Of a stretch of DNA of 64,000 nt, positions 1 through 39,292 are shown piece after piece; positions within the stretch are counted from its first letter, which is position 1; each line of letters opens with the position of its first letter. Position numbers and translations under genes: made by a program. The notes beneath the pieces are model-generated. The model worked only from the letters and a program-made list of their open reading frames with translations, was not told where the DNA came from and made no database searches. The DNA lies in IMG/VR virus record IMGVR_UViG_3300032288_004964, positions 248,001-312,000 of that record. One strand, given 5' to 3'.

Positions 1-3000
1 AATCCATCAACACTTACTGCTACAAGACAAGAAACTGATGATGTCATAGATGTTATAATGATATCATTAGCATGAGCCGTATATTGTCTACTTGCGGTTA
101 TGTTAGATCCTAAAATAGAAGATCCTGTCATACCATTTGTAGTATTATTACATCCACCAATTATAGAACCAAATGGTGCATTTGAAGTATTACAATAACC
201 CCCACCTATAGCAGAATAAGATGAGCAATATCCAGAAATTGTATTTTGTTGACCACCTCCTATTGTTGAAAATGATGAATTAGTACCTGATATTGTATTT
301 GCTATACCACCTCCTATTGTTGAATTAATTGAAGAATACCCAGAGATTGTATTTGAATTACCACCATTTATAGTTGAGTGATACGAATAATAACCTGAGA
401 TTGTATTTTGTTGACCACCACCTATATTTGAGTTATTTGAATATTGACCACTTATTGAGTTTAATGATCCACCATTTATAGTTGAGTTGTATGAGTTGAA
501 TCCAGATATTGTATTTTGTTGACCACCTCCTACTGTTGAACTATATGAATTAAATCCAGATATTGTATTTAATGTACCACCGCTTATAGTTGATCTATAT
601 GAATTTGTACCAGATATTACGTTTTGAACACCTCCGCTTATAGTTGAGCAATGTGAATAAGTACCACATATTTTGTTTAAGCGTCCGCCTCCTATTGTTG
701 AATCTATTGAGCAGTATCCAGATATTTCGTTTTGTCTACCACCAGATATAGTTGATTGATGAGAGAATTGACCTGAGATTGTATTTTGACATCCACCACT
801 TATAGTTGAAGAGTTACTAGTAGCTCCAGAGATAATATTACAAGAACCTCCACTTATTGTTGAATAATATGAAATATTTCCAGAGATTAAATTACAATAT
901 CCACCGCTTATAGTTGAAATAGTAGAAGTATTACCAGAGATTGTATTAAGTTTACCACCACCTATAAATGATTGATATGAGTAAAGACCAGAAACTATAT
1001 TATAATAACCACCACTTATAGTTGAAAAACATGAATTGGTACCAGAAATTGAATTAGATCTACCACCGCTTATAGTTGAATATTCCGAATTAATTCCAGA
1101 TATTATATTGGCGTTTCCTCCTCCTATTGCTGAAAAAAATGAGTTAGAACCAGAGATTGTATTACAAGAACCTCCTCCTATTGTCGAATTATCTGAATTA
1201 GGACCAGATATTGTGTTCGTCTGTCCACCGGATATAGTAGAGTAATATGAATTAATTCCAGAAATTGTATTATCACATCCACCACTTATAGTTGATTGAT
1301 ATGAATTTGTACCTGAAATTTTATTTAATTGACCACCAGATATAGTGGAATAATAAGAAGATTTACCAGAGATTGTATTAGTACTACCACCACCTATAGC
1401 TGAGTAATATGAACATTCTCCAGAGATTGTATTTGTTAGACCACCACTTATTGTAGATCTATATGAATTTGTACCTGAAATTATATTATTATAACCCCCA
1501 CCTATAGTAGAAGAATCTGAATTATATCCTGATATTGTATTAGTACCACCACCACTTATAGTTGATTGATATGAATAACAACCAGAGATTGTATTAGTAC
1601 TACCACCACTTATAGTTGATTTTTGTGAGTAAAAACCAGAGATTGTATTAGTACTACCACCACTTATAGTTGATTTTTGTGAATAATATCCAGATATTGT
1701 ATTTTGCTGACCACCTCCTATAGTTGATAAGCACGCACTGTAGTATGATGAAACTGTATTACAACATCCACCACTTATAGTTGATAAACATGAACTCTCT
1801 ATACAATTACAATAACCACCACTTATAGTTGAACAATTTGAGCTAGATATATAATTAAAATAACCACCACTTATAGTTGATCTATATGAATAAGAGCAGA
1901 TCATATTTGCTTCACCACCACTTATAGTTGATAAGCATGAGTCAGTTATACAATTATTCCAACCGCCGCCTATATTAGAGTAATTTGATGCTCTTATTGT
2001 ATTAGAGACTCCACCACTTATAGTTGATAACCATGAAGAACTACATATTGTATTAAATTGACCACCACCTATAGCAGATCTAAGAGATCCGTCACATATT
2101 GTATTACTAGAACCACCAACTATATTAGATGCTAATGAGTTTGAAATTATATTTTGGCTACCACCTGATATAGTTGAGGTGGAACCTGAACTTGTTCCGC
2201 TTATTACATTAAGTTGACCACCTGATATAGTTGATGATCCTGAATTTGTTCCAGATATTGTATTATTTCTTCCACCACCTATAGTAGACCAACAAGAACT
2301 TGTAGCTGATATTATATTATTACAACCACCACTTATAGTGGATTGACGAGAAGAACTAGATATTGTATTAGAATTACCACCACTTACCGTTGAGCAAGCA
2401 CCAGCTGCACTATTACTTAATCCACATCTTTCAGTAGATCCAAGTCCCGAACCTAAAACAATAATTGCTGATGCTGATAATCCTGGACCAGTTGGACCTT
2501 GTATACCTTGTGGACCTTGTGGACCCGGAGATCCTTGAGATGCTAAAAGTGCCCAACTTATAGTATCAATATCTGGTGATGATGTTGTTGGTCCGACTGG
2601 ACTTAAACAAAACCAAGATGCACTTGCATACCCAACTGCATCATTAATTGAATATGATGCTCCACTTGACCAAGATCCCTGCCAAGTTAAACCAGCAGGA
2701 CCTACTGGACCAGCAACACCTTGAGGTCCTATTGGACCTTGTGCACCAATTGAGCCGCTAGTTCCAGATGTGCCAGTTGTTCCAGATGTGCCAGATGTAC
2801 CTGTTGTACCGGATGTTCCACTCGTACCTGATGTTCCAGTTGTACCGGAAGTACCACTTGTTCCATTACTACCATCAGTACCATCTATACCAGATAATCC
2901 AGATGTTCCTGAAGTACCAGATGTTCCTGAAGTACCAGATGTACCGGAAGTGCCATTAGTACCATTAGTTCCAGTAGCTCCGGTTATGGTAACATAAGCA

Positions 3001-3848
3001 CCTGTTAAATTAACCCACCATTGACTATAAGTATTACCAACAGATTCTGAATAGTTAACTACTATTGCCATTGTTCCTGAAATAGGATCATAAGAATCTA
3101 CTTCACCAATCATATATCCACCATAAGTATCTACAACATAATCATCTATGTATAAACCAGGAAAATAATCAAACATAACGACTGACTGGCCATATGAATA
3201 AGCCAACCCAGGCTGAACTTGAAAATTAACAACATATCCAACACCAGGTACTTCAATAGTTGTACTTGATGTACCTCTATATCTATCACCTACTGGACCT
3301 GTTGCTCCGGTAGGACCTTGTAATCCTATTGATCCTGTAAATCCTTGAGGACCAGTAGGACCAGATATCCAATATCCAGATAGGTTTACATACCATTGAC
3401 TATAGGTGTTACCAACAGATTCAGAATAATTAACAACTAATGATATAGATCCTGTTATTTTATCATAAGAATCTACTTCACCAATAATATATCCACCGTA
3501 AGTATCTACAGTATAGTCATCTACATATAGTCCTGGGAAATAATCAAACATAACAACAGACTGACCATATGTATATGCTAAATCAGGTTGAATATTAAAG
3601 TTAATTACACTACCAACTAAAGGAACTTCTATTGTATTACTTGATGTGCCTCTATATCTATCACCAAATCCAGTTGCTCCCGTGGGACCAATACCACCAC
3701 TAGTAGCAGTTGATCCAATTGGGGTAATAACTCCAAATTGGTCTTTTTGTTTTAAAATATTATCTACATCATATGCAACTAAATAACCAGTTGAAGGTGT
3801 AGCTGCTGTAGTTAAAGACATTGTATTCCCAAAAAGTATAGAACTCAT
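1..3848 (-). CDS. Large tail-fibre/adhesin-like protein, 3'-truncated by the window edge; duplicated ~95-aa domain, collagen-like GxY and GTS repeats, ~18-aa STISGGxxNTISG repeats
   Basis: ATG at 3848 (MSSILFGNTMSL...); frame read as open to the window start, so it is absent from the ORF track; AATATATA motif upstream. Confidence 0.8.
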   Translation of the reverse strand, partial: MSSILFGNTMSLTTAATPSTGYLVAYDVDNILKQKDQFGVITPIGSTATSGGIGPTGATGFGDRYRGTSSNTIEVPLVGSVINFNIQPDLAYTYGQSVVMFDYFPGLYVDDYTVDTYGGYIIGEVDSYDKITGSISLVVNYSESVGNTYSQWYVNLSGYWISGPTGPQGFTGSIGLQGPTGATGPVGDRYRGTSSTTIEVPGVGYVVNFQVQPGLAYSYGQSVVMFDYFPGLYIDDYVVDTYGGYMIGEVDSYDPISGTMAIVVNYSESVGNTYSQWWVNLTGAYVTITGATGTNGTNGTSGTSGTSGTSGTSGTSGLSGIDGTDGSNGTSGTSGTTGTSGTSGTSGTTGTSGTSGTTGTSGTSGSIGAQGPIGPQGVAGPVGPAGLTWQGSWSSGASYSINDAVGYASASWFCLSPVGPTTSSPDIDTISWALLASQGSPGPQGPQGIQGPTGPGLSASAIIVLGSGLGSTERCGLSNSAAGACSTVSGGNSNTISSSSRQSTISGGCNNIISATSSCWSTIGGGRNNTISGTNSGSSTISGGQLNVISGTSSGSTSTISGGSQNIISNSLASNIVGGSSNTICDGSLRSAIGGGQFNTICSSSWLSTISGGVSNTIRASNYSNIGGGWNNCITDSCLSTISGGEANMICSYSYRSTISGGYFNYISSSNCSTISGGYCNCIESSCLSTISGGCCNTVSSYYSACLSTIGGGQQNTISGYYSQKSTISGGSTNTISGFYSQKSTISGGSTNTISGCYSYQSTISGGGTNTISGYNSDSSTIGGGYNNIISGTNSYRSTISGGLTNTISGECSYYSAIGGGSTNTISGKSSYYSTISGGQLNKISGTNSYQSTISGGCDNTISGINSYYSTISGGQTNTISGPNSDNSTIGGGSCNTISGSNSFFSAIGGGNANIISGINSEYSTISGGRSNSISGTNSCFSTISGGYYNIVSGLYSYQSFIGGGKLNTISGNTSTISTISGGYCNLISGNISYYSTISGGSCNIISGATSNSSTISGGCQNTISGQFSHQSTISGGRQNEISGYCSIDSTIGGGRLNKICGTYSHCSTISGGVQNVISGTNSYRSTISGGTLNTISGFNSYSSTVGGGQQNTISGFNSYNSTINGGSLNSISGQYSNNSNIGGGQQNTISGYYSYHSTINGGNSNTISGYSSINSTIGGGIANTISGTNSSFSTIGGGQQNTISGYCSSYSAIGGGYCNTSNAPFGSIIGGCNNTTNGMTGSSILGSNITASRQYTAHANDIIITSMTSSVSCLVAVSVDG
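150..2400 (-). repeat. Degenerate ~54-bp coding tandem repeat (beta-helix/YadA-head-like motif)
   Basis: Recurrent gattgtatt...ccaccacttatagttga with ~54-nt period, e.g. near-identical units at ~1587-1695. Confidence 0.85.
2755..2980 (-). repeat. 9-bp coding repeat encoding (GTS)n
   Basis: gttccagat/gtaccagat units; the + strand VPD ORFs are its shadow. Confidence 0.85.
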
Positions 3849-3928
3849 GTATAAGATTTATTTTATTATAGTGTATATATTATTTTATTAAATCCTTTTT
3901 ATTTTTTATCTTTGTAAAAAGAAATAAA

Positions 3929-4351
3929 ATGGGACATTGTATATCAGTATATTTAATTAAAAAAGAAGATTTAAGAGATGAAAAACTATCTGAAGTATTA
4001 GATGGTAAAAAACAAACAAAGATTGTCTGGACAGAGTTAAAAGAAGGAATTTTAGCTACTCCATTCATACCAGATATTAGAGAATTCGGTAGAGATAAAA
4101 CAATTGCTAAAATTGAAACCGACTATTTTGGAGGACCCGGTTATCAGGAAGCTAAACTATTTGTAAATAATAAGAAAGAATATAATAAGTCTAGTGAGTT
4201 TGACCATTTAGTAAGTCCTATTAATGATGTACTAAAACTAATGGGTATTATTAAAAGGGAAGGTATGGATGAATTTGATACTATTGGGTTAGGAAACTAT
4301 AGATCTAATAGAGATTTTAACCACCAAGAAGCAGAAATTGGAGAATTATAA
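3929..4351 (+). CDS. Hypothetical protein
   Basis: ORF track; TATCTTTG promoter element just upstream. Confidence 0.7.
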   Translation: MGHCISVYLIKKEDLRDEKLSEVLDGKKQTKIVWTELKEGILATPFIPDIREFGRDKTIAKIETDYFGGPGYQEAKLFVNNKKEYNKSSEFDHLVSPINDVLKLMGIIKREGMDEFDTIGLGNYRSNRDFNHQEAEIGEL

Positions 4352-4917
4352 TGAAAAAAGAAGAAATACTAAGTAGTAGAAAAAAATCAATTTATATTTA
4401 TAAAAACACATTTACTACAGGTATAGTAGATGGTCAGTTTATTTTAGATAGAGATTTATTTGATAAACATTGTAGAAAATATGACTTTATACATGGTGAC
4501 ATTAAATCTCCAAATATAATGGGTCAATATTTTTTATATGAGTCTTTAATAGATGGTAGGTTTAAGTCAAATATGTTACACGATCTTGAGTTACATTATC
4601 CAAAATTAGGAGTCTATTTAAACTCTCTTCCATGTGATCAAACAATTGAAGTTGAATGGGTTGATTACAGGAGAACTTGGGAATGGAATATTGAATATGA
4701 TTACAATTACCAGGAAAAGGTATATCAAAATTATATGGCTGAAATTCCAACCGAGATCCAAAGACTACCTCTTTGGTCTGACTCTTTATTAGTTTATGGT
4801 GTTTGGGATTCTAAACCAAATTGGAAACAACTAAAACAAGCTTATGAAAAAACTTGGTGGTTTCATAGAAGTGTAGAAGACCTGAGAGACCTACAATTAG
4901 AAAGATTATTAAAATGA
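4351..4917 (+). CDS. Hypothetical protein (C-terminal RDxxLxxLL motif)
   Basis: ORF track, coupled starts and stops. Confidence 0.7.
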   Translation: MKKEEILSSRKKSIYIYKNTFTTGIVDGQFILDRDLFDKHCRKYDFIHGDIKSPNIMGQYFLYESLIDGRFKSNMLHDLELHYPKLGVYLNSLPCDQTIEVEWVDYRRTWEWNIEYDYNYQEKVYQNYMAEIPTEIQRLPLWSDSLLVYGVWDSKPNWKQLKQAYEKTWWFHRSVEDLRDLQLERLLK

Positions 4918-5207
4918 TTAAAGACTTCAATTACATAAAATATCCAGAAGATAGATTATATCTAAGGGTTGGTAATTTATGTCAAGTTATGAAAGACAAT
5001 CTCCAAGCAAAGAGCTTTACAATATCTTGGGTGTATTTGGCTGAGATTCAAAGAAGAATAAAGTCTGATGTCGATCCCGAAGAAATTAAGAGAATTGAAT
5101 CACATCTTCTTTCACCTGAATTTATTAATCAAAAGTGTTTTAGTGATTCGGATAAACAAAACCTCAAATCAATTATTAGAGAATATAAACTAAAGCAAAT
5201 TCTATGA
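4914..5207 (+). CDS. Hypothetical protein (C-terminal REYKLKQIL)
   Basis: ORF track, ATGA overlap. Confidence 0.7.
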   Translation: MIKDFNYIKYPEDRLYLRVGNLCQVMKDNLQAKSFTISWVYLAEIQRRIKSDVDPEEIKRIESHLLSPEFINQKCFSDSDKQNLKSIIREYKLKQIL

Positions 5208-5479
5208 GTTGGGATGGAATATACGCAAAAGATAGAGTTTATCCACAATTTGAGCCTGGTGATGAAGTATTTACAACTAAAAGTAGTTGGAGAGCAATTA
5301 GTGCCAATAAACCATATCAAGTTGTTAAATGTCACAAGAAACCAGGTATGACCGTTGATATTTGGGTCATTACTTTAATAACCGATGGTGGATATGAAAG
5401 TGATTATGCTTCCTATCAGTTTCAGAAAACAAAAAGACAAATAAGAGAAGATAAAATTAAATCTATACTTAATATCTAG
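5204..5479 (+). CDS. Hypothetical protein (C-terminal REDKIKSIL)
   Basis: ORF track, ATGA overlap. Confidence 0.7.
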   Translation: MSWDGIYAKDRVYPQFEPGDEVFTTKSSWRAISANKPYQVVKCHKKPGMTVDIWVITLITDGGYESDYASYQFQKTKRQIREDKIKSILNI

Positions 5480-5834
5480 GAATTTTCATATCCGTAGTAA
5501 TCTCTATCTTAAATCCAAATCCTGTATCTTCATCTGAACTATATTTAACTTCAGAATCATATCCGTTTCTACCATCAAATGTAGTTGGTCTTGGACCATA
5601 CATTCTTTGTTGTCTTCTCATTTCTTCTTCTTTTAACTTAGCTTCATGTTGGGCAACCATTTCTTCAAATGTTAATCCTTGTTGTTCAACCTGTTGCGGC
5701 TCTTGATGTGTAGAAAATTGTTGAGGTTGATGTCCATATTTTCTTAATAATTGTTCAGCTTCCCAACTATTAATATTAGCTGGTTGAGTATGTTCTTCTT
5801 GACTTTGGACTATTCTTACTTGAGGTCTTTCCAT
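5469..5834 (-). CDS. Hypothetical Q/E-rich protein
   Basis: ORF track. Confidence 0.65.
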   Translation of the reverse strand: MERPQVRIVQSQEEHTQPANINSWEAEQLLRKYGHQPQQFSTHQEPQQVEQQGLTFEEMVAQHEAKLKEEEMRRQQRMYGPRPTTFDGRNGYDSEVKYSSDEDTGFGFKIEITTDMKIPRY

Positions 5835-5843
5835 AATATTAAA

Positions 5844-6320
5844 TTAAGTTTTTATCAAATTAATTCTATTTCCACCAAAGTATTCTAATTTGTAACCAGG
5901 TATAGGATTTCTTTGTAAGTATCTTAAATAAACTTTTGTTCTTTGTGATATATATTCTTTTTCTTGTTCCTTTGGAAGACCAACCATTGTTATTTTTTTA
6001 ACCCAAGATTTTCTTTTTATAAAATCTTTTAATATACCACCAAATATAGTTTCTACCGTTCTATATAAATTAACATTTACAATTTTAGAAACTTCATAGT
6101 ATTCTTTTTCTGGATCATATACAAAATATGACAATTCATATTCTGTTCCTAAATTATTTGATTTAAGTATAGGTATATTTTTAAATTCAACTAGATACCA
6201 ATTATCAATAGTATCTTGAAATCTATATCTTACTTTTTTATCATTATCGGAAGCCAATTCCCAAGAATAAGATTCAACAGATTCTAATAATAAATCATAT
6301 ATAGAATTAATATATTTCAT
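5844..6320 (-). CDS. Hypothetical protein, putative late gene
   Basis: ORF track; TAATATATA motif immediately upstream. Confidence 0.7.
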   Translation of the reverse strand: MKYINSIYDLLLESVESYSWELASDNDKKVRYRFQDTIDNWYLVEFKNIPILKSNNLGTEYELSYFVYDPEKEYYEVSKIVNVNLYRTVETIFGGILKDFIKRKSWVKKITMVGLPKEQEKEYISQRTKVYLRYLQRNPIPGYKLEYFGGNRINLIKT

Positions 6321-6911: not shown

Positions 6912-6983
6912 GGTCTTGTCGACTAATGGTTAGGTCAACACCCTTTCAAGGTGTAGATGCGGGTTCGATCCCCGTCAAGACTA
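6912..6983 (+). tRNA. tRNA-Glu(TTC)
   Basis: Cloverleaf; acacc-CTTTCAA-ggtgt. Confidence 0.9.
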
Positions 6984-6992
6984 CAAATAAAT

Positions 6993-7078
6993 GCTACGGT
7001 ATGCAAACCGGAATAAGCGACCAGACTTTCAATCTGGACATCGAAAGATGTGTGCGGGTTCGAGCCCCGTCCGTAGTA
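6993..7078 (+). tRNA. tRNA with TTC (Glu) anticodon and long variable arm
   Basis: ccaga-CTTTCAA-tctgg; acatc-gaaa-gatgt V-arm; A73. Confidence 0.8.
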
Positions 7079-7081
7079 CAA

Positions 7082-7223
7082 AAATATCAGGAGTACCTGT
7101 CGTAGAAAGTTAATCACTTTCCCTGATATTTATAAAACTCAATGAAGTAAGTGACTTTAGGTAGTACCGACAGGAGGGTGAATTTGATTAAGTTCTTTGG
7201 GGTTCGAATCCCACCATTGAGTT
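7082..7223 (+). ncRNA. Hairpin plus tRNA-like element (acceptor stem and T-arm) with potential mutual pairing
   Basis: actcaatg/cattgagt stem; GGTTCGAATCC; cctgtcg(7096)/cgacagg(7168) complementarity. Confidence 0.45.
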
Positions 7224-7228
7224 GTTTT

Positions 7229-7312
7229 GGGAATGCGCCAACGTTGGAGAGTTGGGCTAGTCTGTAAAACTAGTGGCTTATGCCTGAGTGAGTTCGATTC
7301 TCACCATTCCCA
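7229..7312 (+). tRNA. tRNA-Tyr(GTA)
   Basis: ctagt-CTGTAAA-actag; long V-arm. Confidence 0.85.
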
Positions 7313-7316
7313 CAAG

Positions 7317-7541
7317 ATGAAGATAATAGATTTTTTAATACAAGTAGGTACCTTCAAAAGTAAAGGTGAGGCAATTAGAGCTGTAAAAAACAAAATGACT
7401 TTGAAGATAAGAGGTACTGATGAAAGTAATGTTCAATATAAAGATATCATAATAGATGAAAGTAATATAAATGGTTATATCTATATTGAAAATGAAAAGG
7501 TTTATGTAACAAATTTTGATATAAAAGATTTGGTAGATTGA
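7317..7541 (+). CDS. Small S4-like RNA-binding-domain protein
   Basis: True start likely ATG 7317 after the tRNA; IIDFLIQVGTFKSKGEAIRAV resembles the S4 motif of the TyrRS C-terminus. Confidence 0.55.
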   Translation: MKIIDFLIQVGTFKSKGEAIRAVKNKMTLKIRGTDESNVQYKDIIIDESNINGYIYIENEKVYVTNFDIKDLVD

Positions 7542-7578
7542 ACTTTTTTATTTATCTTTGTAAAACAAATATAAAAAT

Positions 7579-7651
7579 GCACCGTTAGTGAAGCGGCTAA
7601 CACGTCTCCCTTTCACGGAGAAGATCATCGGTTCGAACCCGATACGGTGTA
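7579..7651 (+). tRNA. tRNA-Glu(TTC)
   Basis: tctcc-CTTTCAC-ggaga; own TTTG...TATCTTTG promoter at ~7529-7562. Confidence 0.9.
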
Positions 7652-7659
7652 CAAATTTT

Positions 7660-7739
7660 GGGAGTATCGCATAGCGGCAATTGCAGTAGACTGTAAATCT
7701 ACCCTTTCGAGTTCGAAGGTTCGAGTCCTTCTACTCCCA
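7660..7739 (+). tRNA. tRNA-Tyr(GTA)
   Basis: gtaga-CTGTAAA-tctac. Confidence 0.9.
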
Positions 7740-7743
7740 CAAA

Positions 7744-8373
7744 TTATATATCAGAGTCACTCCTAAGTAATCCACACTTTTGACACTCTTCAAATCCATC
7801 ACCATCTTTATCTCCCCAAATGTGTTCACAATTTCTGTGTTCAAAATATTCATCAATATCCCCATCACCATCAGTATCATATCCGTCATTAACACCATCA
7901 CCATCTTCATCAACTTCAACCTTTTCAAAAACAGGTTTTGACTCGACTGGAATATTAACTACTTCAGTTTTTCTTTTCATTGATGATGTATAGTCAGGCA
8001 TAACTGTTTCTTTCTTTGGTTCATCCGGAAACTCACCTGCTTTTGAAAGTGACATTCCATCCTCTTCATCAACTTTTTGAATTAACATTTTATCTCTATC
8101 TTCTGAATTAAATCAATAATCAATAACTTTATTTAAATTACCAACAAAAGCACCTAATAAAATTAATAACATTTCTTTCCAGTCCTCTCCAATTGATATT
8201 CCAAAAAATACCGCTGAATTAATACCAACAATTATAAGTATAAATATACCTAATACTATGGCGGTTATTCTCCATCTATTTGCCTGCATTTGCTGAAGCA
8301 TATAATAAAATCTATTTTTATCTTCAACTTTTATATAATCTGTTTTACTACTAAAGAATTTTCCCAATCCCAT
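7744..8373 (-). CDS. Two-TM membrane protein with acidic DxDGDG C-terminus, interrupted by an in-frame TGA at 8113-8115
   Basis: ORFs 8113..8373 and 7744..8088 share a frame and are joined by TGA-TTT-AAT-TCA-GAA-GAT-AGA-GAT-AAA. Confidence 0.6.
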
Positions 8374-8476
8374 AATTAATTTTTATTTTTATATATTAAT
8401 TTAAAAATAAAAAAAATAAAAAAATTATTAGGGGGAGTGAAACTTTTTATATATATTTGTATAAGAGATTAAAACT

Positions 8477-8560
8477 ATGAAAAATTTACATAACATATCA
8501 ATAGCGATTATAGCGGGCGGCGCGGGGAGCGACTGTCATTGGCTGAGTTATGTGTTGTAA
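8477..8560 (+). CDS. Attenuator leader peptide 2 (Ile/Ala/Gly sensor) MKNLHNISIAIIAGGAGSDCHWLSYVL
   Basis: ATA/GCG/GGC/GGG codon run; followed by a terminator and Ile/Gly/Ala tRNAs. Confidence 0.85.
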   Translation: MKNLHNISIAIIAGGAGSDCHWLSYVL

Positions 8561-8587
8561 ATAATAAATATATTTATAATAATATTG

Positions 8588-8618
8588 AAACCCAGTCACA
8601 AAATGACTGGGTTTTTTT
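8588..8618 (+). terminator. Attenuator terminator 2
   Basis: aaacccagtca-caaaa-tgactgggttt plus U tract; tggctgagtt (8540-8549) can pair with the 5' arm. Confidence 0.85.
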
Positions 8619-8627
8619 AATTTATAT

Positions 8628-8701
8628 AGGTGAGTAGCTTAGATGGTAAAAGCATGTGTCTTATACACACAAGATAGTGGGATCGTTACCCACCTCACCT
8701 A
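8628..8701 (+). tRNA. tRNA-Ile(TAT)
   Basis: tgtgt-CTTATAC-acaca; T-loop ATCGTTA. Confidence 0.85.
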
Positions 8702-8929
8702 CTGAAAAAAATAAAAATGAAAGGAAAAATGAAAAGTTGAAATTGAATTGTTGGTTTATTTATAGATGTGTTAATAGTAATATCTATTTTCACCGTGTTA
8801 AATAAGAATATTAAATGTCGTATTTATGAAAATGAATATGAGACATGGGTACCTGACTTAAACGGTAACATACAACGTAAAGAAACTAAAACAATTGTTA
8901 TTAACTTCTTAAGAAGATTAGGATAACAA

Positions 8930-9003
8930 GCAATAGTGGTGTTAATGGTTTAGCACATCTGACTTCCAATCAGAAGGTGTCGGTTCGAATCCGGTCTAAT
9001 GCA
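8930..9003 (+). tRNA. tRNA-Gly(TCC)
   Basis: tctga-CTTCCAA-tcaga. Confidence 0.85.
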
Positions 9004-9050
9004 CAAAGTGAGAAAACACTTAAAAACCATCCCACCAGGATGTAAAAATC

Positions 9051-9133
9051 GCGGGTGTAGTATAGTGGAGGCGAAAGCCGTATTATATCGGTCTTCCAAA
9101 CCGAAGATGTGAGTTCGATTCTCATCACCCGCT
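9051..9133 (+). tRNA. tRNA-Gly(TCC) with D-loop hairpin insertion
   Basis: tcggt-CTTCCAA-accga; ggc-gaaa-gcc in the D-loop. Confidence 0.85.
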
Positions 9134-9146
9134 CAAATAATGTAAT

Positions 9147-9222
9147 GGGGTTACATGTACCAAGGCTTAGGCGAGACTGCTTTGCAAGCAATCTGTGGTG
9201 GGTTCGATTCCCACTAGCTCCA
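9147..9222 (+). tRNA. tRNA-Ala(TGC)
   Basis: TTTGCAA loop; G3.U70 pair; atypical D arm. Confidence 0.75.
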
Positions 9223-9234
9223 CAAAAAAAACAA

Positions 9235-9307
9235 GCGAAAGTAGCTCAGTTGGTAGAGCGTAACCTTGCCAAGGTTAAGGTCGCGGGTTCGAGACCCGTC
9301 TTTCTCT
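9235..9307 (+). tRNA. tRNA-Gly(GCC)
   Basis: taacc-TTGCCAA-ggtta. Confidence 0.85.
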
Positions 9308-9308
9308 C

Positions 9309-13387: not shown

Positions 13388-13552
13388 ATGCCAGCTAAAG
13401 ATAAAATGTTTTCTCTTAGAGTACCTGAGAAATTACTTGAAGATTATAAAAAATTCTGTGATGAAAATTCTATCAATATTTCAAAAAGACTAAGAAAGTT
13501 TATGGAAAGAGATATTGAAATTTGGAAATCTAAACAAAAAAATAAAGAGTGA
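13388..13552 (+). CDS. Ribbon-helix-helix-like small DNA-binding protein
   Basis: MPAKDKMFSLRVPEKLLEDYKKFCDENSINISKRLRKFMERDI fits the RHH pattern. Confidence 0.6.
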   Translation: MPAKDKMFSLRVPEKLLEDYKKFCDENSINISKRLRKFMERDIEIWKSKQKNKE

Positions 13553-13800
13553 GTGATAAAATTTGTTATATTTGTTTAAGTGATGATATCTATTATGATG
13601 TTGATGAACCACTTATTTGCGATATGTGTGATGAGTATTACTGTTATGAATGTTCATATACCTACTCAATTCATTATCAACATGAAGGATCAAGATGTTA
13701 TCAATGTGCTGACCAGAGTAGGAGAAAACCTTTAAACAGAAGAGACTATAAAATAGATTACATTTTAAGAAATGAAAAAATTAAAAATATTTTAAAATAA
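13549..13800 (+). CDS. Cys-rich zinc-finger-like protein
   Basis: Four CxxC pairs. Confidence 0.65.
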   Translation: MSDKICYICLSDDIYYDVDEPLICDMCDEYYCYECSYTYSIHYQHEGSRCYQCADQSRRKPLNRRDYKIDYILRNEKIKNILK

Positions 13801-14075: not shown

Positions 14076-14148
14076 GGACTGGAAGCTAGTATGGTACAGC
14101 TGCGGCCTGTTAAGCCGAGGATAGTGGGATCGTTACCCACCCAGTCCG
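14076..14148 (+). tRNA. tRNA-Asn(GTT)
   Basis: cggc-CTGTTAA-gccg; T-loop ATCGTTA. Confidence 0.8.
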
Positions 14149-14164
14149 CAAAAAGAAATAAAAA

Positions 14165-14243
14165 CGGTGCGTACCGAGCCACACTGATAATGTGGATATT
14201 CGTAATGGTGTTGCAAATGTAGGTTCAAATCCTATCGTACCGA
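14165..14243 (+). tRNA. D-armless tRNA-like gene with GAT (Ile) anticodon and long variable region
   Basis: cggtgcg/cgtaccg; ccaca-CTGATAA-tgtgg; GGTTCAAATCC. Confidence 0.55.
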
Positions 14244-14249
14244 CAAAAT

Positions 14250-14322
14250 GGTTCCTTCGTTCAACTGGACAGGACATCGGTCTTCTAAACCGAGGATATG
14301 GGTTCGAATCCCGTAGGGACTA
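14250..14322 (+). tRNA. tRNA-Arg(TCT)
   Basis: tcggt-CTTCTAA-accga. Confidence 0.9.
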
Positions 14323-14384
14323 CTGAGAGAGACCGTTTATAGTTTTTAACAGGACACAAGAGTGGAAGCGTAGAAAACTAAAAT

Positions 14385-14468
14385 GCCGGAGTGGCGAAAT
14401 GGTTAATACGCGCTAGCCTTAGAAGCTAGTGTCTATATGACGTGTGGGTTCGAGTCCCACCTCCGGTA
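14385..14468 (+). tRNA. tRNA-Leu(TAG)
   Basis: ctagc-CTTAGAA-gctag; long V-arm. Confidence 0.9.
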
Positions 14469-14500
14469 CTGAAGTGAAACTAAAGTTCACTACTAAAAAT

Positions 14501-14586
14501 TACTGTGTTGCCGTAGTGGCCGAACGGTCCAGACTGTTAATCTGGTGACGAATAGTCCAACGTAGGTTCGAATCCTACCACAGTAG
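14501..14586 (+). tRNA. tRNA-Asn(GTT) with long variable arm
   Basis: ccaga-CTGTTAA-tctgg; G73. Confidence 0.8.
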
Positions 14587-14591
14587 CAAAA

Positions 14592-14664
14592 GCCCCCGTA
14601 GCTTAATCGGGAAAGCACTTGTTTTACATACAAGATAGAGTCGGATCGTAACCGGCCGGGGGTA
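14592..14664 (+). tRNA. tRNA-Val(TAC)
   Basis: cttgt-TTTACAT-acaag; T-loop ATCGTAA. Confidence 0.85.
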
Positions 14665-14671
14665 CAAATAT

Positions 14672-14744
14672 TGTCAGTTAGCTCATTTGGTAGAGCACTT
14701 GTCTGATACACAAGAGGTGGTGGGATCGTAACCCGCACTGACAA
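14672..14744 (+). tRNA. tRNA-Ile(GAT)
   Basis: cttgt-CTGATAC-acaag; T-loop ATCGTAA. Confidence 0.85.
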
Positions 14745-14750
14745 CAAAAT

Positions 14751-14833
14751 GGTACTGTGGCCGAGCGGTGTCGAAAGACGAGAGGCAGTAGTCTGCAAAA
14801 CTACTCACACTGGTTCGAATCCAGTCAGTACCT
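14751..14833 (+). tRNA. tRNA-Cys(GCA) with D-loop hairpin insertion
   Basis: gtagt-CTGCAAA-actac; U73; gtc-gaaa-gac in the D-loop. Confidence 0.85.
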
Positions 14834-14845
14834 CAAAAAGAGTTC

Positions 14846-14917
14846 GCTCTCTAAGCATTAATGGTGATGCGCTAGTCTTGTAAACTAGATAAATCGGATC
14901 GTTACCGGTAGAGAGCT
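14846..14917 (+). tRNA. tRNA-Thr(TGT)
   Basis: ctagt-CTTGTAA-actag; T-loop ATCGTTA. Confidence 0.85.
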
Positions 14918-14922
14918 CAAAT

Positions 14923-15068
14923 CGGTAGGACCCTATATTCTGTGGTAACTTCTAGAGAAGCCACAAGATGAATCGGTCTGGGTTAAAAACCAAACTTGGT
15001 TATTTGATATTCTAGAAATCATCATTTAATTAAGATTGGGAAGGTAGGTTCGAATCCTACCCTACTGT
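14923..15068 (+). ncRNA. 146-nt tRNA-like RNA (acceptor stem and T-arm enclosing a multi-hairpin core)
   Basis: cggtagg/cctactg; gtagg-TTCGAAT-cctac; no recognisable anticodon arm. Confidence 0.5.
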
Positions 15069-15075
15069 CAAATAT

Positions 15076-15147
15076 TGTTCTGTAGCTCAATGGGAGAGCA
15101 CTTCCTTGACATGGAAGAGGTAGTCGGATCGTTACCGACCAGAACAA
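15076..15147 (+). tRNA. tRNA-Val(GAC)
   Basis: cttcc-TTGACAT-ggaag; T-loop ATCGTTA. Confidence 0.85.
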
Positions 15148-15148
15148 C

Positions 15149-15267
15149 TTAATGGATGGTGATTGAAAGAGTTACTTCGTTTAATGGAAAAACAATTGAC
15201 TTCTAATCAGTGCACGGTGGTTCGATTCCACCAGTATAAAACCTCTTTCTACCTTTTCCTCCATTAA
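15149..15267 (+). ncRNA. Y-RNA-like element carrying D, anticodon (TCT, Arg) and T arms on a long closing stem
   Basis: ttaatgga/tccattaa and gaaagag/ctctttc stems; shares GTTACTTCG...AGTA(T)AAAAC with the 9309 element. Confidence 0.55.
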
Positions 15268-15269
15268 AT

Positions 15270-15349
15270 GCTGATGTGGCACAGTGGCGACTGCACCAAC
15301 CTTGTAAGTTGGAACACAAACATCGGGGGTTCGAGTCCCTCCATCAGCT
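15270..15349 (+). tRNA. tRNA-Thr(TGT) with extended variable region
   Basis: ccaac-CTTGTAA-gttgg. Confidence 0.8.
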
Positions 15350-15356
15350 CAAAAAT

Positions 15357-15443
15357 GCTTCTGTGGCGAAATTGGCAGCACGCGAGGGACTTAAAATCCC
15401 TTGGACCGGAAAGTCCGTATCGGTTCGAGTCCGATCAGAAGTA
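15357..15443 (+). tRNA. tRNA-Leu(TAA)
   Basis: aggga-CTTAAAA-tccct. Confidence 0.9.
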
Positions 15444-15449
15444 CTAAAA

Positions 15450-15521
15450 TGCGATATAGCTTAATGGAAGAGCGGCTCCAGACATAGGGAGTTAGTCTTG
15501 GTTCGATTCCAGGTATCGCGA
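15450..15521 (+). tRNA. tRNA-Met-like with 8-nt anticodon loop (AGA-CAT-AG)
   Basis: gctcc-AGACATAG-ggagt; normal D and T arms. Confidence 0.6.
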
Positions 15522-15526
15522 CAAAT

Positions 15527-15596
15527 GGCGTGGCTTAGTGGAAAAGAGCAGTCTCTCATAAGGACTGATAAGTGGGTTCGAACCCCATACACGCTA
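15527..15596 (+). tRNA. Atypical tRNA with CAT anticodon (Met or Ile2)
   Basis: agtct-CTCATAA-ggact; short acceptor/D connector. Confidence 0.6.
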
Positions 15597-21617: not shown

Positions 21618-22044
21618 AGAAGTTGAAATATTAAAAATTGGAAGTATCATACCACCAGTAAGAATTAATGGTATGTATGATACTTCCATCAAACCTACCG
21701 CTATGGTAGTTTTTGATGCTGGATCAATATATGATCACTATGTCTCTATTCTTAGAGAAGAATGTAAAAATGATTATAGATTTCTAAAAACAGAAAAGTC
21801 TATTATTTCAGATAGATTCTCAAATAGGGTTGCTGGTAGAATAGGAGAAGGACATTCTTATGTTGGTAAGTTTGATGATGAACCACAAGTTGGTAAATCA
21901 TTTACTCTTGGTAATGGATCTTGGTCTACAACTACAGTTATTAATATAATTGATGAGAATATAATTATCACAAAGAATTCTATATATGCTATTCATGATG
22001 TCTCGAAAATGAGAGATAAAAAATTGAAAGATTTAGGAATATAA
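21610..22044 (+). CDS. Hypothetical protein (C-terminal RDKKLKDLGI)
   Basis: ORF track; ATG at 21610 overlapping the upstream stop is the likely start. Confidence 0.65.
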   Translation: MTKEVEILKIGSIIPPVRINGMYDTSIKPTAMVVFDAGSIYDHYVSILREECKNDYRFLKTEKSIISDRFSNRVAGRIGEGHSYVGKFDDEPQVGKSFTLGNGSWSTTTVINIIDENIIITKNSIYAIHDVSKMRDKKLKDLGI

Positions 22045-23297: not shown

Positions 23298-23302
23298 CAA
23301 AA

Positions 23303-23374: not shown

Positions 23375-23383
23375 CTAAAATTT

Positions 23384-23702: not shown

Positions 23703-23704
23703 AT

Positions 23705-28026: not shown

Positions 28027-28448
28027 TTAATTTTTTTCATCATGGAAATAATATCGGATTCTCCTTTAATGGAGTTTCCGGTTTTATTTTGCTATTTTTT
28101 TTAATATATGAAGTAGGATTTTTTCTTTTTACAAGAACATTTACTATTCATAAAATATACCTTTACATTGTAGTTAGAAGACAATTAAAACAAATGATAC
28201 CTAAATGGTGGGAAATAAACAGTATGAGTTTTGTTTATATTCATAAAAAAAATAAATACTATGAGGTTTATATTAAACTTCGTAGAAAATTTAATGAAGG
28301 ATGGGCAAATGATTTTATTAAAGTAAATTCTATCGGTAAAATAATTAACTCAGATTTTATGAACTATATTAATGAATATGATCAAAAATATCAAAATGAA
28401 ATTAAACAATGGATGAGAAATAAGGCTTTAGAAGATATTGGAATTTAA
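28023..28448 (+). CDS. Hypothetical membrane protein
   Basis: N-terminal TM; C-terminal RNKALEDIGI. Confidence 0.6.
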   Translation: MINFFHHGNNIGFSFNGVSGFILLFFLIYEVGFFLFTRTFTIHKIYLYIVVRRQLKQMIPKWWEINSMSFVYIHKKNKYYEVYIKLRRKFNEGWANDFIKVNSIGKIINSDFMNYINEYDQKYQNEIKQWMRNKALEDIGI

Positions 28449-32255: not shown

Positions 32256-32529
32256 GGAAGAAGTAATTGAATATACTAAGAATCATCTAAAAATGAGTAG
32301 TGACTTTGGCCCATTTTATAAGATCAAAGATATCAAAATTTTAGAAGTTACTATAAATGATCCATTTGCAGTAGCATATGTTCAATATAAAACAGAAGTC
32401 TATAAAATACATGATGGATTTATTCCAAATGTTGGTAAGTTTGTAGATGGTACTTTAACAATTGATTTAACTGAACCCGAATTTAAAAGAGATATAAAAA
32501 TAAATAGAATATTAAACCCAGATAATTAG
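32242..32529 (+). CDS. Hypothetical protein (C-terminal RDIKINRIL)
   Basis: ORF track. Confidence 0.6.
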   Translation: MLVTKEEVIEYTKNHLKMSSDFGPFYKIKDIKILEVTINDPFAVAYVQYKTEVYKIHDGFIPNVGKFVDGTLTIDLTEPEFKRDIKINRILNPDN

Positions 32530-37156: not shown

Positions 37157-39292
37157 ATGATAAATGAAAAATTAGATGGTAGTGAATACCTAAAAAATCT
37201 TCCTGATGTTAAAGCATCATTAGAAGATGATGAGGACGAAGATAAGTCTTTTAGTTCTAAAAAACCAGACAGTAAGTCTAAGACTCCCGTTTTAGATACT
37301 TATAGCCGTGATTTAACCAAAATGGCTGAAGAAGGAAAACTAGACCCTATTGTTGGTAGAGAAAAAGAAATTGAAAGAGTTTCTCAAATTCTTTCACGTA
37401 GAAAGAAAAACAACCCAATTTTAATTGGTGAACCAGGTGTTGGTAAATCTTCAATTGCTGAAGGATTAGCACTTCGTATTATCCAAAGAAAAGTAAGTAG
37501 AATTCTTTTTAACAAAAGAGTTGTAATGTTAGACTTGGCTTCAATGGTTGCTGGTACTAAATACCGTGGTCAATTTGAAGAAAGAGTTAAGGCTTTAATG
37601 GGAGAACTTGAAAAAGAACCAAATGTAATTCTTTTCATTGATGAGATTCATACTATGATTGGTGCTGGTGGAGCATCAGGATCATTAGATGCCTCTAATA
37701 TGTTCAAACCCGCTTTAGCAAGAGGTGAAATCCAAATCATTGGTGCTACTACTTTGGATGAATACCGTAAACACATTGAGAAAGATGGAGCTTTAGAAAG
37801 AAGATTTCAGAAAGTTATGGTTGAGCCAGCTTCTCCGGAAGAAACTTTACAAATCATTTCTAACATCAAAGACAAGTATGAGTCGCATCACAATGTTACT
37901 TATACTGAAGAAGCTATCAAAGCTTGTGTTGATTTAACTTCTCGTTATATGAATGATAGATTCCTTCCAGATAAAGCTATTGATGCTTTAGATGAGGCTG
38001 GGTCTCGTGTTCATATCTCAAACATTGTAGTTCCTAAAGAAATCACTGATATTGAAAAGAAAATTGTAGATATCAAGGATAAAAAGAATGAAGTAATTCG
38101 TTCTCAAAAGTATGAAGAAGCTGCTAAGTTAAGAGATGTTGAAAGACAATTAAATGAATCTTTAGAATCAGCTAGAAAAGCTTGGGAAGAAGACTCTTCT
38201 AAAAACAGACAAACTGTTACAGAAGATAATGTTGCTGAAGTTGTTTCAATGATGACTGGAATTCCTTTACAAAAAGTAACTCTTAATGAAACTAACAAGT
38301 TAGGTAAAATGCAAGAGTCTATTATTGGTAAGGTAATTGGTCAAGATGATGCTGTTAAAAAGATTGTTAAAGCAATTCAAAGAGGTCGTGTTGGTCTTAA
38401 AGATCCAAACAAACCAATTGGTTCATTTATGTTCTTAGGACCAACTGGTGTAGGTAAAACACAATTAGCTAAGGTATTGGCTAAGTATCTATTTGATTCA
38501 GAAGATTCTTTAATTAGAATTGATATGTCTGAATATATGGAGAAATTCGCAGTATCTCGTTTGATTGGAGCTCCTCCAGGATATGTTGGACATGATGAAG
38601 GTGGTCAATTAACTGAAAAAGTTAGACGCAAACCTTATTCAGTTGTTCTTCTTGATGAGATTGAGAAGGCTCATCCTGAAGTGTTCAACTTATTACTTCA
38701 AGTTTTAGATGATGGTCAATTAACTGATTCATTGGGTAGAAAAGTTAATTTCAAAAACACTATCATTATTATGACTTCTAATACAGGTTCACGTCAATTA
38801 AAAGACTTTGGAACTGGAGTTGGTTTCTCCACTAAGAACAGAGAAAGTAAAGGACAAGAAGAATCAAATGCTGTTATTGATAAGGAATTAAAAAAGAAAT
38901 TCGCACCAGAATTCTTAAACCGTATTGATGATGTGGTTATGTTTAACTCTCTTGTAAAAGAAGATATTAACAAGATTATCTCTATTGAGTTAGAAAAGTT
39001 AGTAGGCCGTGTCCAAGAAATGGAATACAACTTAGATATCACATCAGAAGCTGTTGATTATATTGCATCTGAAGGATTTGACCCAGAGTATGGAGCAAGA
39101 CCTTTGAAGAGAGCAATTCAAAGATTAGTTGAAGATGTTCTAACCGAAGAGATTATTCAAAGTAATCCGGATAAAGGATCTAAACTTTCTTTAAGTTATA
39201 ACAAAGAAGAAGAAAAGATGGTTGTTCAAATTACCCCACCTGAATCTAAAGTTGCTAAGAAAAGAGCACCTAAGAAAAAAGATGATAAGTAA
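37157..39292 (+). CDS. clpC: ClpC-type AAA+ chaperone lacking the N-terminal Clp-repeat domain
   Basis: Two Walker A motifs ([16 protein letters not shown]); UVR middle domain YEEAAKLRD; GVGF ClpP-docking loop. Confidence 0.85.

Follow-up and report, generated by a model that had tools for sequence, protein, structure and literature searches.

Portable peptide tags are known in phages and bacteria, among them the T4 capsid targeting sequence, encapsulin cargo peptides, degrons and dockerins. In T4, unrelated internal proteins and Alt share a peptide of roughly 10 residues, which is N-terminal and is cut off by the prohead protease, whereas the cargo-loading peptides of encapsulins, also about 10 residues long, are C-terminal and are added to unrelated cargo to bind an HK97-fold shell. 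In AAA+ proteolysis, C-terminal degrons of the ssrA type and the C-terminal tethering peptides of adaptors, such as the ClpX-binding (XB) tail of SspB, direct otherwise unrelated proteins or their cargo to an unfoldase; the ssrA type needs the free non-polar end, and the known tethers bind the unfoldase N-domain. In the dockerin-cohesin system of cellulosomes, one small module, with a duplicated F-hand calcium-binding loop plus helix, plugs many different proteins into a common scaffold. Finally, in type VI secretion, which also has Hcp rings, the N-domain of the Hsp100-type ATPase ClpV recognises a short amphipathic helix of VipB.

Here we describe a C-terminal tag in a 385,333-bp T4-like freshwater jumbo phage (IMG/VR record IMGVR_UViG_3300032288_004964), starting from a 64,000-nucleotide stretch of its DNA (positions 248,001 to 312,000 of the record), which is referred to below as the window. 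About one in ten of the phage proteins (about 42 of 445 genes), almost all small and otherwise unrelated, end in the same ten-residue predicted helix (R-D/N/E-x-K-I/L-x-x-I/L-L), which is far too frequent to be chance and is shared by a clade of huge phages. The initial annotation, made from the letters of the window alone, had pointed out such a tag at the ends of small proteins with unrelated bodies, and that observation is confirmed and is stronger than was first thought: all nine C-terminal strings that it listed are present, although the positions it listed are gene starts and not ends. Its interpretation, a portable helix serving as a docking, localisation or degradation tag, for example for an N-domain-less ClpC, is partly supported, in that the portable helix fits everything measured while ClpC as the partner is neither shown nor excluded. 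Our literature searches found no description of the motif and no report of a C-terminal helical tag spread over so many unrelated, probably early, phage proteins. The features of the window are collected in Table 1.

Table 1. Tags and associated features of the window (nucleotide positions within the 64,000-nucleotide stretch)
Position	Strand	Feature	Details
3839..3928	+	Upstream region of the 3929-4351-4914-5204 gene array	Holds a TAnnTTTG box, the Bacteroidota sigma-A -7 type; the same box precedes 20370, 25993, 31559 and 35212, which head the other window arrays that hold tagged genes and ClpC; promoter function inferred from the consensus
3974..4000	+	N-proximal copy of the motif in gene 3929-4351 (140 aa)	Residues 16-24; this protein has no C-terminal tag
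4885..4911	+	Tag of gene 4351-4917 (188 aa)	Residues 179-187, followed by one residue (K) and the stop
5178..5204	+	Tag of gene 4914-5207 (97 aa)	Residues 89-97; the tag is the very end of the protein
5444..5470	+	Tag of gene 5204-5479 (91 aa)	Residues 81-89, followed by two residues
13741..13794	+	Two tandem tags at the end of gene 13549-13800 (83 aa)	Residues 65-73 and 74-82
22012..22038	+	Tag of gene 21589-22044 (151 aa)	L-G-I-COOH variant
28416..28442	+	Tag of gene 28023-28448 (141 aa)	I-G-I-COOH variant
32488..32514	+	Tag of gene 32242-32529 (95 aa)	Followed by four residues
36756..37133	+	Conserved gene directly upstream of ClpC	Predicted Hcp / tail-tube-like beta body (residues 12-95); low-confidence helix 103-119 with a tag-like motif (nt 37074-37100, no K at position 4) plus a 10-residue tail
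37157..39292	+	Phage ClpC (711 aa), candidate receptor	Aligns with B. subtilis ClpC residues 150-804, including the M-domain UVR motif and the VGF ClpP-docking loop; N-domain replaced by about 35 residues with a conserved short peptide and an acidic run

Compared with the ssrA-type degrons, the phage motif does not require the extreme C-terminus: it ends one residue before the end of the protein in 67 of 125 cases, but 0-6 or more extra residues occur, the last residue is K, I, N, D, S and others, and the protein encoded next to ClpC has a 10-residue tail. The SspB type of tether is likewise not matched, since the phage ClpC starts at the equivalent of B. subtilis ClpC residue 150 and has no Clp_N domain, so that any docking would have to use another surface; the tag sequence is also unrelated to these peptides. 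As for the T4 capsid targeting sequence, the position is reversed, with 1 N-terminal against 33 C-terminal hits, there is no cleavage motif, no head-module protein carries the tag, and the tagged genes lie mostly outside the late/structural module. The encapsulin peptides have a different consensus, as the tag lacks a G-S-L core, and the phage peptide is predicted to be helical rather than extended, in a genomic context that is early-type rather than structural. The dockerins resemble the tag in logic, and the best PDB profile hits of the tag are the dockerin helices of a scaffoldin adaptor protein; however, this match is at chance level (E about 0.5), there are no calcium-binding loops, no duplicated segment and no conservation upstream of position -3, no Pfam dockerin hit was obtained among 147 tagged proteins, and the proteins here are cytoplasmic and belong to a phage. 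With ClpV and type VI secretion there is the parallel that a predicted Hcp-fold protein is encoded next to the phage ClpC, but ClpV uses its N-domain, there is no sheath and there are no other T6SS genes here, and the similarity is in fold only (Z about 11, sequence identity 5-15%). The UVR motif of UvrB/UvrC and the ClpC M-domain, a helix-loop-helix of about 35 residues (PF02151), does not account for the tag either: only 1 of 147 tagged proteins matches UVR, the match is in its body and not in the tag, and the spacing of hydrophobic residues after R-D differs by one residue. The tag does have the properties of a short linear motif, in that it recurs in proteins without detectable homology, more often than chance, and is conserved in orthologues.

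To establish that the motif is in excess, we called 445 genes on the whole genome and scanned them for R[DEN]xx[IL]xx[ILV][LG]. Within the last 25 residues there are 33 hits, against 0.24 +/- 0.59 in whole-protein shuffles (maximum 3 in 100) and 0.48 +/- 0.67 in shuffles of only the last 25 residues (maximum 3 in 1000); an absence of excess over composition-matched shuffles had been named beforehand as the result that would overturn the observation, and it is clearly not what was found. Only 9 hits are internal, corresponding to a 52-fold enrichment per position at the C-terminus, and the reversed motif occurs once at C-termini and the forward motif once at N-termini. The gene calls come from a crude codon-score caller and the motif was defined by regular expressions refined on the same genomes; without any gene calling, however, a scan of all ORFs of 50 aa or more gives 43 C-terminal tags in this genome, whereas three jumbo phages of GC 0.30-0.34 give 0, 0 and 2. 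Within the window, a scan of every ORF of 50 aa or more found no C-terminal copy beyond those in Table 1, the only other match being an internal, probably chance, one in GlnRS. Codons at the motif differ between genes (CTA, TTA, TTG, ATT, ATA; AGA, CGG), as do the downstream sequences, so this is not a repeated DNA element and selection acts on the peptide. The bodies are indeed unrelated by these measures: the 42 bodies with the tag removed give no blastp pair at E <= 0.01, and 147 tagged proteins from five genomes share no Pfam or PHROG family, with three isolated hits only (DUF6011, DUF2158 and UVR). Furthermore, tagged and untagged small proteins do not differ in pI, charge, hydropathy, TM segments or stop codon, apart from a slightly shorter length of the tagged ones.

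The tag is restricted to one clade. Relatives carry 21-48 tags per genome, including two published 634 and 642-kb phages, while six other huge-phage records of similar GC have none or two. In detail, there are 43 tags in this phage (G000), 34, 48, 21 and 5 in the tag-bearing genomes G002, G005, G011 and G015, and 13 per 50 kb in LR745206 and LR756502; against this, there are 0, 0, 2, 0 and 0 in the comparison records G007, G006, G009, G013 and G014, and 0 in the samples of LR756501, LR756504, LR756508 and Lak-B4. Of 127 cross-genome orthologues, 100 keep the strict tag and 114 a loose one at a median body identity of 41%, with R1 invariant, which points to purifying selection, and of 120 metagenomic homologues of the 188-aa protein 112 keep it. 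The 123 homologues of this protein point to contigs of 250-640 kb. The tag is also modular, since in a 28-member paralogous family of G011 6 members end in the tag and at least 17 in a different ending.

The consensus is K or hydrophobic at -3, then R1, D/N/E2, x, K4, I/L5, x, x, I/L8, L/I9 (or G9 followed by I/L), then 0-2 further residues. On a helical wheel, positions -3, 1, 2, 4, 5, 8 and 9 all fall within a 160-degree arc, and the variable positions 3, 6, 7 and 10 face away. When the search was anchored only on R[DEN]xK near the C-terminus, position 5 was I or L in 83 of 88 and position 8 was I, L or V in 83 of 88, with hardly any F, W or M, which suggests a specific pocket rather than general amphipathicity. 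AlphaFold2 models the tag as a terminal helix, at residues 175-187 with pLDDT about 82 in the 188-aa protein, for which a fold search returned no PDB match at E <= 0.001, and at residues 103-119 with pLDDT 59-66 in the protein encoded upstream of ClpC, the latter suggesting a mobile helix. This second model has pLDDT 79.6 overall, and VIA-align gives Z 11.5-10 to Hcp and tail-tube proteins; synteny and the tag-like motif are conserved in 17 relatives.

Analysis of upstream sequences revealed two putative promoter classes. Structural genes (MCP, portal-like, gp24-like) have AATATATA[CAG] about 25 nt upstream (P1), whereas most tagged genes of the window, and the phage ClpC, sit in operons with the TAnnTTTG box (P2). 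Tagged genes split P2:P1 = 21:7, against 23:79 for the structural half of the genome (Fisher p = 5e-7). These classes are consensus-based, the P2 box has low information (643 genome-wide matches), no RNA run was found that holds the region, and tagged genes do not differ significantly from untagged small genes of the same region (p = 0.18); the assignment to early expression is an inference.

Several lines bear on ClpC as the potential receptor. Every tag-bearing genome examined has an N-domain-less ClpC with the ClpP-binding VGF loop, and most carry the conserved N-terminal peptide, whereas most tagless phages have full-length ClpC. Also, ClpC shares an early-type operon with tagged genes, and its conserved neighbour carries the tag-like helix. 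These points are confounded by common descent and by ascertainment, because all IMG/VR tag-bearing genomes were reached through a ClpC search, and the tag and the N-less ClpC may simply be two traits of one clade. G013, a 137-kb fragment about 53% complete, has an N-less ClpC and no tags, and G011 has 21 tags but no detectable Hcp-like neighbour. The residues that separate the ClpCs of tag-bearing and tagless phages are few (16) and scattered, with no patch, and ClpC adaptors and degrons known from the literature use the N-domain, which is missing here. Complex prediction of full-length phage ClpC with the last 34 residues of the 188-aa protein returned a score of 0.00, without controls and with a monomeric ClpC and a short peptide that may be unsuitable, which is no evidence either way; no method showed binding. 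Searches of the phage for a C-terminus reader or protease found no ClpP, S41 tail-specific protease or PDZ. Phyletic profiling for a gene present only in tag-bearing genomes mostly returned clade-specific core genes (DnaK, topoisomerase II, gp32, RNase H, NusG-like, DUF2201 peptidase-VWA, a GHKL ATPase), with no single candidate standing out, as the tagless comparators that share ClpC share only 40-60 genes with this phage.

We therefore favour, tentatively, the interpretation that the motif is a portable C-terminal docking helix attached to about 40 otherwise unrelated small accessory proteins per genome in one clade of freshwater huge phages. In this view the helix would present one conserved face (Arg, Asp/Asn, Lys and three aliphatic side chains) to a single shared receptor pocket, and the tag would tether these probably early proteins to one hub early in infection, the most likely hub being the phage ClpC working with host ClpP. 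The tag would then act either as a degron that limits the life of early proteins, or as the tether of adaptors that deliver host targets. The analysis itself establishes that the tag is real, selected, modular, helical in the models and clade-specific; that it docks to one receptor and that the genes are early is inferred, and ClpC as the receptor is speculative, being the leading candidate on circumstantial evidence only.

The best surviving alternative, although a doubtful one, is that the tag is a host-takeover address label which docks the small proteins onto a conserved host hub, such as RNA polymerase, the ribosome, the sliding clamp, ClpP or another protease, or the nucleoid. The tagged genes are ORFan, fast-turnover small genes in arrays with host-type promoter boxes, the usual place for host-takeover genes, the tag consensus is nearly constant across phages whose own proteins have diverged to 40-60% identity, as expected if the receptor is a slowly evolving host protein, and no phage protein could be singled out by phyletic profile. 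However, related huge phages that presumably infect similar hosts (LR756501, LR756504, Lak) lack the tag in the samples taken, which fits a clade-specific phage receptor somewhat better.

It is unlikely that the helix is instead a self-association or stabilising element, for example a short zipper that makes the small proteins oligomerise with themselves or with each other, or a cap that packs on each body. In the 188-aa protein the helix follows only about 5 residues after invariant core-like W-W-x-x-R residues and is modelled with fair pLDDT, so it may pack on the body, and the tandem duplication in gene 13549 would suit a zipper. But a cap that packs on unrelated folds would not need an invariant Arg and the same seven positions in 147 different bodies, the helix looks mobile in the Hcp-like protein, and its presence in only 6 of 28 paralogues shows that the fold does not need it.

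Slightly less likely still is a virion-packaging signal, the functional counterpart of the T4 capsid targeting sequence or of encapsulin cargo peptides, that would load many small proteins into the large head for co-injection. T4-like head genes are present (gp23-like MCP) and a huge capsid has room, but 39 of 42 tagged genes lie outside the structural half of the genome and tagged genes mostly lack the AATATATA box that precedes the head genes, in addition to the differences from the T4 signal given above. A membrane-targeting amphipathic helix like the C-terminal helices of MinD or FtsA is also improbable: the tag is C-terminal and amphipathic, has hydrophobic residues at i, i+3 and i+4, as in the B. 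subtilis MinD tail, and is flanked by Lys and Arg, but there are only three aliphatic residues, acidic residues are favoured at positions 2 and 6, the Arg is invariant, I/L is strictly preferred with almost no F, W or M, whereas lipid-binding helices tolerate such swaps, and the bodies are soluble with no other membrane features (3 of 42 have TM-like segments, as in untagged proteins). An artefact, whether AT-rich low-complexity coding bias in a 29% GC genome where K, I, N and L are common, hidden homology of the proteins, or a DNA element such as a terminator or promoter read through in frame, is refuted by the shuffles, the phages of the same GC, the reversed motif, the differing codons and downstream sequences and the dissimilar bodies.

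A more far-reaching possibility, which the evidence does not rule out but which we consider unlikely, is that the phage carries its own targeted-proteolysis system, consisting of a deregulated N-domain-less ClpC that captures host ClpP, a hexameric Hcp-fold ring encoded next to it that stands in for the missing N-domain ring, and about 40 interchangeable small proteins, each of which would bind a different host (or early phage) target with its body and plug into the unfoldase with the common C-terminal helix. This would be a viral library of degradation adaptors comparable in logic to the F-box or BC-box proteins of eukaryotic viruses, and would be of great interest if true.

Huge phages are known almost only from metagenomes, and most of their small genes have no annotation at all. 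The motif is simple enough to be used now as a genome-mining marker for this phage clade, and the short tag could also be useful as a transferable module. If the receptor is the phage ClpC, this would be a virus-encoded substrate-selection system for a bacterial AAA+ protease. A single address label on about 10% of the proteome gives a handle on roughly 40 dark-matter proteins per genome at once, and finding the one receptor would say where all of them act.

The 385,333-bp IMG/VR virus record analyzed here is estimated to be 95% complete, has a GC content of 22-34% in the window, and gives the expected long ORFs with the standard bacterial code. The genome is that of a T4-like jumbo phage, with a gp23-like major capsid protein (MCP), gp32, RNase H, both topoisomerase II subunits and RNA ligase. 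It also carries many cell-like genes, including GluRS and GlnRS, which lie next to tRNA clusters, as well as ClpC, DnaK, a full DnaJ and a second J-protein, a NusG-like factor and adenylate kinase. In the window alone, 29 tRNAs are predicted in four clusters, with duplicates (three Glu-UUC, two Tyr, two Asp and two Gln) and three with irregular anticodon loops. A large ORF of at least 1282 aa, running off the window, has long collagen-like G-x-y and G-T-S repeats and a duplicated module of about 150 aa, and is probably a fibre protein. In addition, a very AT-rich island (GC 0.22-0.27) holds about 18 co-oriented genes, including a GT61 glycosyltransferase and a nucleotidyl transferase, and looks like a sugar or polysaccharide modification cluster. 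Near-identical DNA occurs in freshwater, groundwater, plankton and aquatic metagenomes from about ten studies, and the closest public phage records are the unannotated 634-kb LR745206 and 642-kb LR756502. The coordinates of the features discussed here are collected in the table.

Coordinates of features in the phage genome (G000) and in a related, tag-bearing record (G011); window positions run over bases 248,001-312,000 of the G000 record
Feature	Record	Coordinates	Strand
gp23-like major capsid protein	G000	30982-32664	
Tagged protein with a UVR motif	G000	194227-194529 (locus L011:14227-14526)	+
402-aa protein and DUF2201 metallopeptidase-VWA protein, a pair	G000	372232-375462	+
Large ORF, probable fibre protein	window	3-3848	-
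188-aa tagged protein	window	4351-4917	+
tRNA clusters	window	6912-9308, 14076-15599, 23224-23858, 33611-34921	
Glutamyl- and glutaminyl-tRNA synthetases	window	16465-17922 and 23877-25511	+
Small protein just upstream of ClpC, predicted Hcp / tail-tube fold	window	36756-37133	+
AT-rich island	window	about 39400-56200	+
gp32	window	60959-61930	
Paralogous family with alternative C-terminal endings (examples)	G011	3423-6086, 58357-60736, 65284-67609, 87358-89095 (loci L192-L201)	
DnaK homologue in two pieces	G011	63104-65245	+

The initial annotation had noted a shared C-terminal motif on small, apparently unrelated proteins, and this observation is confirmed: every C-terminal string that it listed is present, although the positions it assigned to these gene ends are those of gene starts. 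A scan of all window ORFs found exactly the same eight tagged genes, one of them with two tandem tags, together with an N-proximal copy in gene 3929 and one internal, probably fortuitous, match in GlnRS. To assess the frequency of the motif, 445 genes were called over the whole genome with a simple, and admittedly crude, codon-score caller, and the pattern R[DEN]xx[IL]xx[ILV][LG] was counted. In total, 33 hits lie in the last 25 residues and 9 elsewhere, a 52-fold enrichment per position. Shuffling each protein gave 0.24 +/- 0.59 C-terminal hits, and shuffling only the last 25 residues gave 0.48 +/- 0.67, with a maximum of 3 in 1000 shuffles; thus the absence of any excess over composition-matched shuffles, which had been set beforehand as the condition for rejection, was not observed. 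The reversed pattern occurs once at C-termini and the forward pattern once at N-termini. With a slightly wider pattern, 42 genes (9.4%) are tagged. The codons that encode the motif differ from gene to gene, and so does what follows the stop, which may be an overlapping start, a terminator hairpin or a plain spacer. The conserved entity is therefore the peptide and not a DNA element.

With the tags removed, the 42 proteins gave no blastp pair at E <= 0.01, and Pfam and PHROG scans of 147 tagged proteins from five genomes returned Pfam hits for only three, with no family shared. One tagged protein, a 100-aa product, contains a UVR motif 60-67% identical over about 30 residues to the M-domain of the phage ClpC, and an orthologue is seen in LR745206. 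Another, the 188-aa product, has more than 120 metagenomic homologues and is modelled with high confidence (pLDDT 87.8) as a beta-rich body that ends in helix 175-187, which is the tag; the model has no PDB neighbour and may represent a new fold. Across genomes, 100 of 127 best body-homologues keep the strict tag and 114 keep a loose version, at a median body identity of 41%, with R1 identical in all pairs, K4 in 79% and position 5 in 77%. In the metagenomic family of the 188-aa protein, 112 of 120 members keep the tag, down to about 42% identity. Furthermore, a 28-member paralogous family of 120-570-aa proteins in G011 has two alternative C-terminal endings, with 6 members ending in the tag and at least 17 in a quite different, conserved ...E-L-P-E-K-I-E-G-Y-T-Y-I. 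The tag can therefore be present or absent on the same fold.

The anatomy of the tag was derived from 125 tagged ORFs. Position -3 is K or hydrophobic; R1 is fixed by the search pattern, but is also invariant in orthologue pairs; position 2 is D more often than N, and N more often than E; position 4 is K in 83 of 125; position 5 is I or L; position 6 is N, D, K or E; position 7 is K or Q; position 8 is I more often than L; and position 9 is L, then I, then G. When position 9 is G, the next residue is I or L, giving the L-G-I-COOH variant. The motif is followed by 0-2 residues in 98 of 125 cases, and by exactly one in 67, and nothing is conserved further upstream. Since the patterns had been refined on the same genomes, we also anchored only on R[DEN]xK close to the end in order to avoid circularity. 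This gave 88 cases in the four tag-bearing genomes, against 10 in four tagless ones, with position 5 being I or L in 83 of 88 and position 8 being I, L or V in 83 of 88, and with almost no F, W or M. On a helical wheel, positions -3, 1, 2, 4, 5, 8 and 9 fall within 300-100 degrees, whereas positions 3, 6, 7 and 10 fall at 140-240 degrees, so that there is one conserved face and one free face. This is the signature of a helix that inserts into a defined pocket, not of a generic amphipathic or lipid-binding helix.

To establish how widely the tag is distributed, whole related records were retrieved and C-terminal tags were counted in all ORFs of 50 aa or more. Tag-bearing genomes comprise this phage (G000, 43 tags) and the related records G002 (34), G005 (48), G011 (21 in 183 kb) and G015 (5 in 95 kb), as well as LR745206 and LR756502, with 13 each in a 50-kb sample. 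In contrast, three jumbo phages of GC 0.30-0.34 (G006, G007 and G009) have 0, 0 and 2, respectively, G013 and G014 have 0, and G012 has 3 odd ones. No tags were found in the samples of LR756501 (two 50-kb samples) or of LR756504, LR756508 and Lak-B4 (one each). A profile HMM of the tag gave the same split. The tag is thus a trait of one clade of freshwater huge phages, and the tagless genomes serve as natural composition-matched controls which, like the HMM and the anchor test, guard against circularity. In G011, the DnaK homologue matches in two pieces separated by about 300 nt, with one in-frame TAA, and may reflect an intron, an intein or a broken gene.

Of the 42 tagged genes, 39 lie in the 180-385 kb half of the genome, which holds replication, translation and chaperone genes, and only three lie in the 0-180 kb half, which holds the structural genes; no head-module protein carries the tag. 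The most tag-rich region (368-377 kb) contains the pair formed by a 402-aa protein and a DUF2201 metallopeptidase-VWA protein, which, of the eleven genomes compared, is found only in the tag-bearing ones. An unbiased 8-mer count on upstream regions revealed two boxes. The first, P1, AATATATA[CAG], occurs in 75 of 211 upstream regions against 3.2 expected, and lies about 25 nt before the MCP, portal-like and gp24-like genes and, in the window, about 30 nt upstream of 13388, 22092 and 32560, for example. From this we infer that it is probably the late-type promoter of this phage, analogous to T4 TATAAATA. The second, P2, TAnnTTTG (often TATATTTGTA), lies 15-25 nt before the first gene of the early-looking arrays, at window genes 3929, 11730, 20370, 25993, 30396, 31559 and 35212, and matches the -7 element of Bacteroidota sigma-A promoters. 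In the window, the arrays 3929-4351-4914-5204, 20370-21589, 25993...28023 and 31559...32242 all start with P2, as does 35212...36756-ClpC, and only 13388-13549 starts with P1. Genome-wide, tagged genes split P2:P1 = 21:7, against 23:79 for the structural half (p = 5e-7), but they are not significantly different from untagged small genes of their own region (50:34, p = 0.18). So tagged genes look like ordinary members of the early, host-RNAP-read accessory arrays, and the host is probably a Bacteroidota, although both statements are inferences from consensus matches.

The window ClpC (711 aa) aligns with B. subtilis ClpC from residue 150 to 804 (E 4e-239), including the M-domain UVR motif and the VGF loop that docks ClpP, but it has no N-domain, and the phage has no ClpP of its own. 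Among 80 ClpC-bearing viral loci, all those with tags have an N-less ClpC of about 700-730 aa, the closer ones beginning with a conserved short peptide followed by an acidic run, whereas most tagless ones have a full-length ClpC of 820-860 aa with the N-domain. LR745206 and LR756502 also have the N-less form. The gene just upstream of ClpC is syntenic in 17 related contigs, and its most conserved stretch is a tag-like R-R-D/E-x-I-x-D/E-I/L-L followed by about 10 residues. Although it lies far from the structural genes, its product is modelled as an Hcp / tail-tube-fold beta body (Z 11.5, rmsd 1.8 over 81 residues to a staphylococcal Hcp-like protein, and Z 10-11 to T6SS Hcp and phage tube proteins) that ends in a helix of low confidence, that is, probably mobile. 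Hcp-fold proteins form hexameric rings, which would match a hexameric unfoldase, but this is suggestive only. Several findings weigh against the ClpC lead: the genomes were found through ClpC, which introduces ascertainment bias; G013 has an N-less ClpC and no tags; G011 has tags but no detectable Hcp-like gene; and no ClpC surface was found that distinguishes the two groups.

The initial annotation had suggested a portable docking, localisation or degradation tag, for example for the N-domain-less ClpC, and this interpretation is partly supported, in that the portable tag holds up whereas the partner is only a lead. The enrichment, modularity, conservation and clade restriction of the tag come directly from the sequence comparisons; its docking to a receptor and the early class of the genes are inferred, and any tag-dependent degradation is speculative. 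We are confident that the tag is real, selected and portable, and consider it likely that it docks to a common receptor. That this receptor would be the N-less ClpC, with host ClpP, and that the tag would act as a degron or adaptor tether, is a tentative proposal, less likely than not. A host hub as receptor is possible, if somewhat more doubtful still. A self-association or capping helix is unlikely, a virion-packaging signal slightly more so, and a membrane-targeting helix less likely again. An artefact can be all but dismissed.

In logic the tag resembles adaptor tethers and degrons of AAA+ proteases, the T4 capsid targeting sequence, encapsulin cargo peptides and dockerins, but it is a member of none of them, since in each case the position, sequence, required partner domain or context fails the defining features. 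Literature searches found no description of this motif in phages. Portable targeting peptides are already known, and this one is unusual in how much of the proteome it covers: in our reading, it is a docking helix that would bring about 40 diverse early accessory proteins per genome to one shared receptor.
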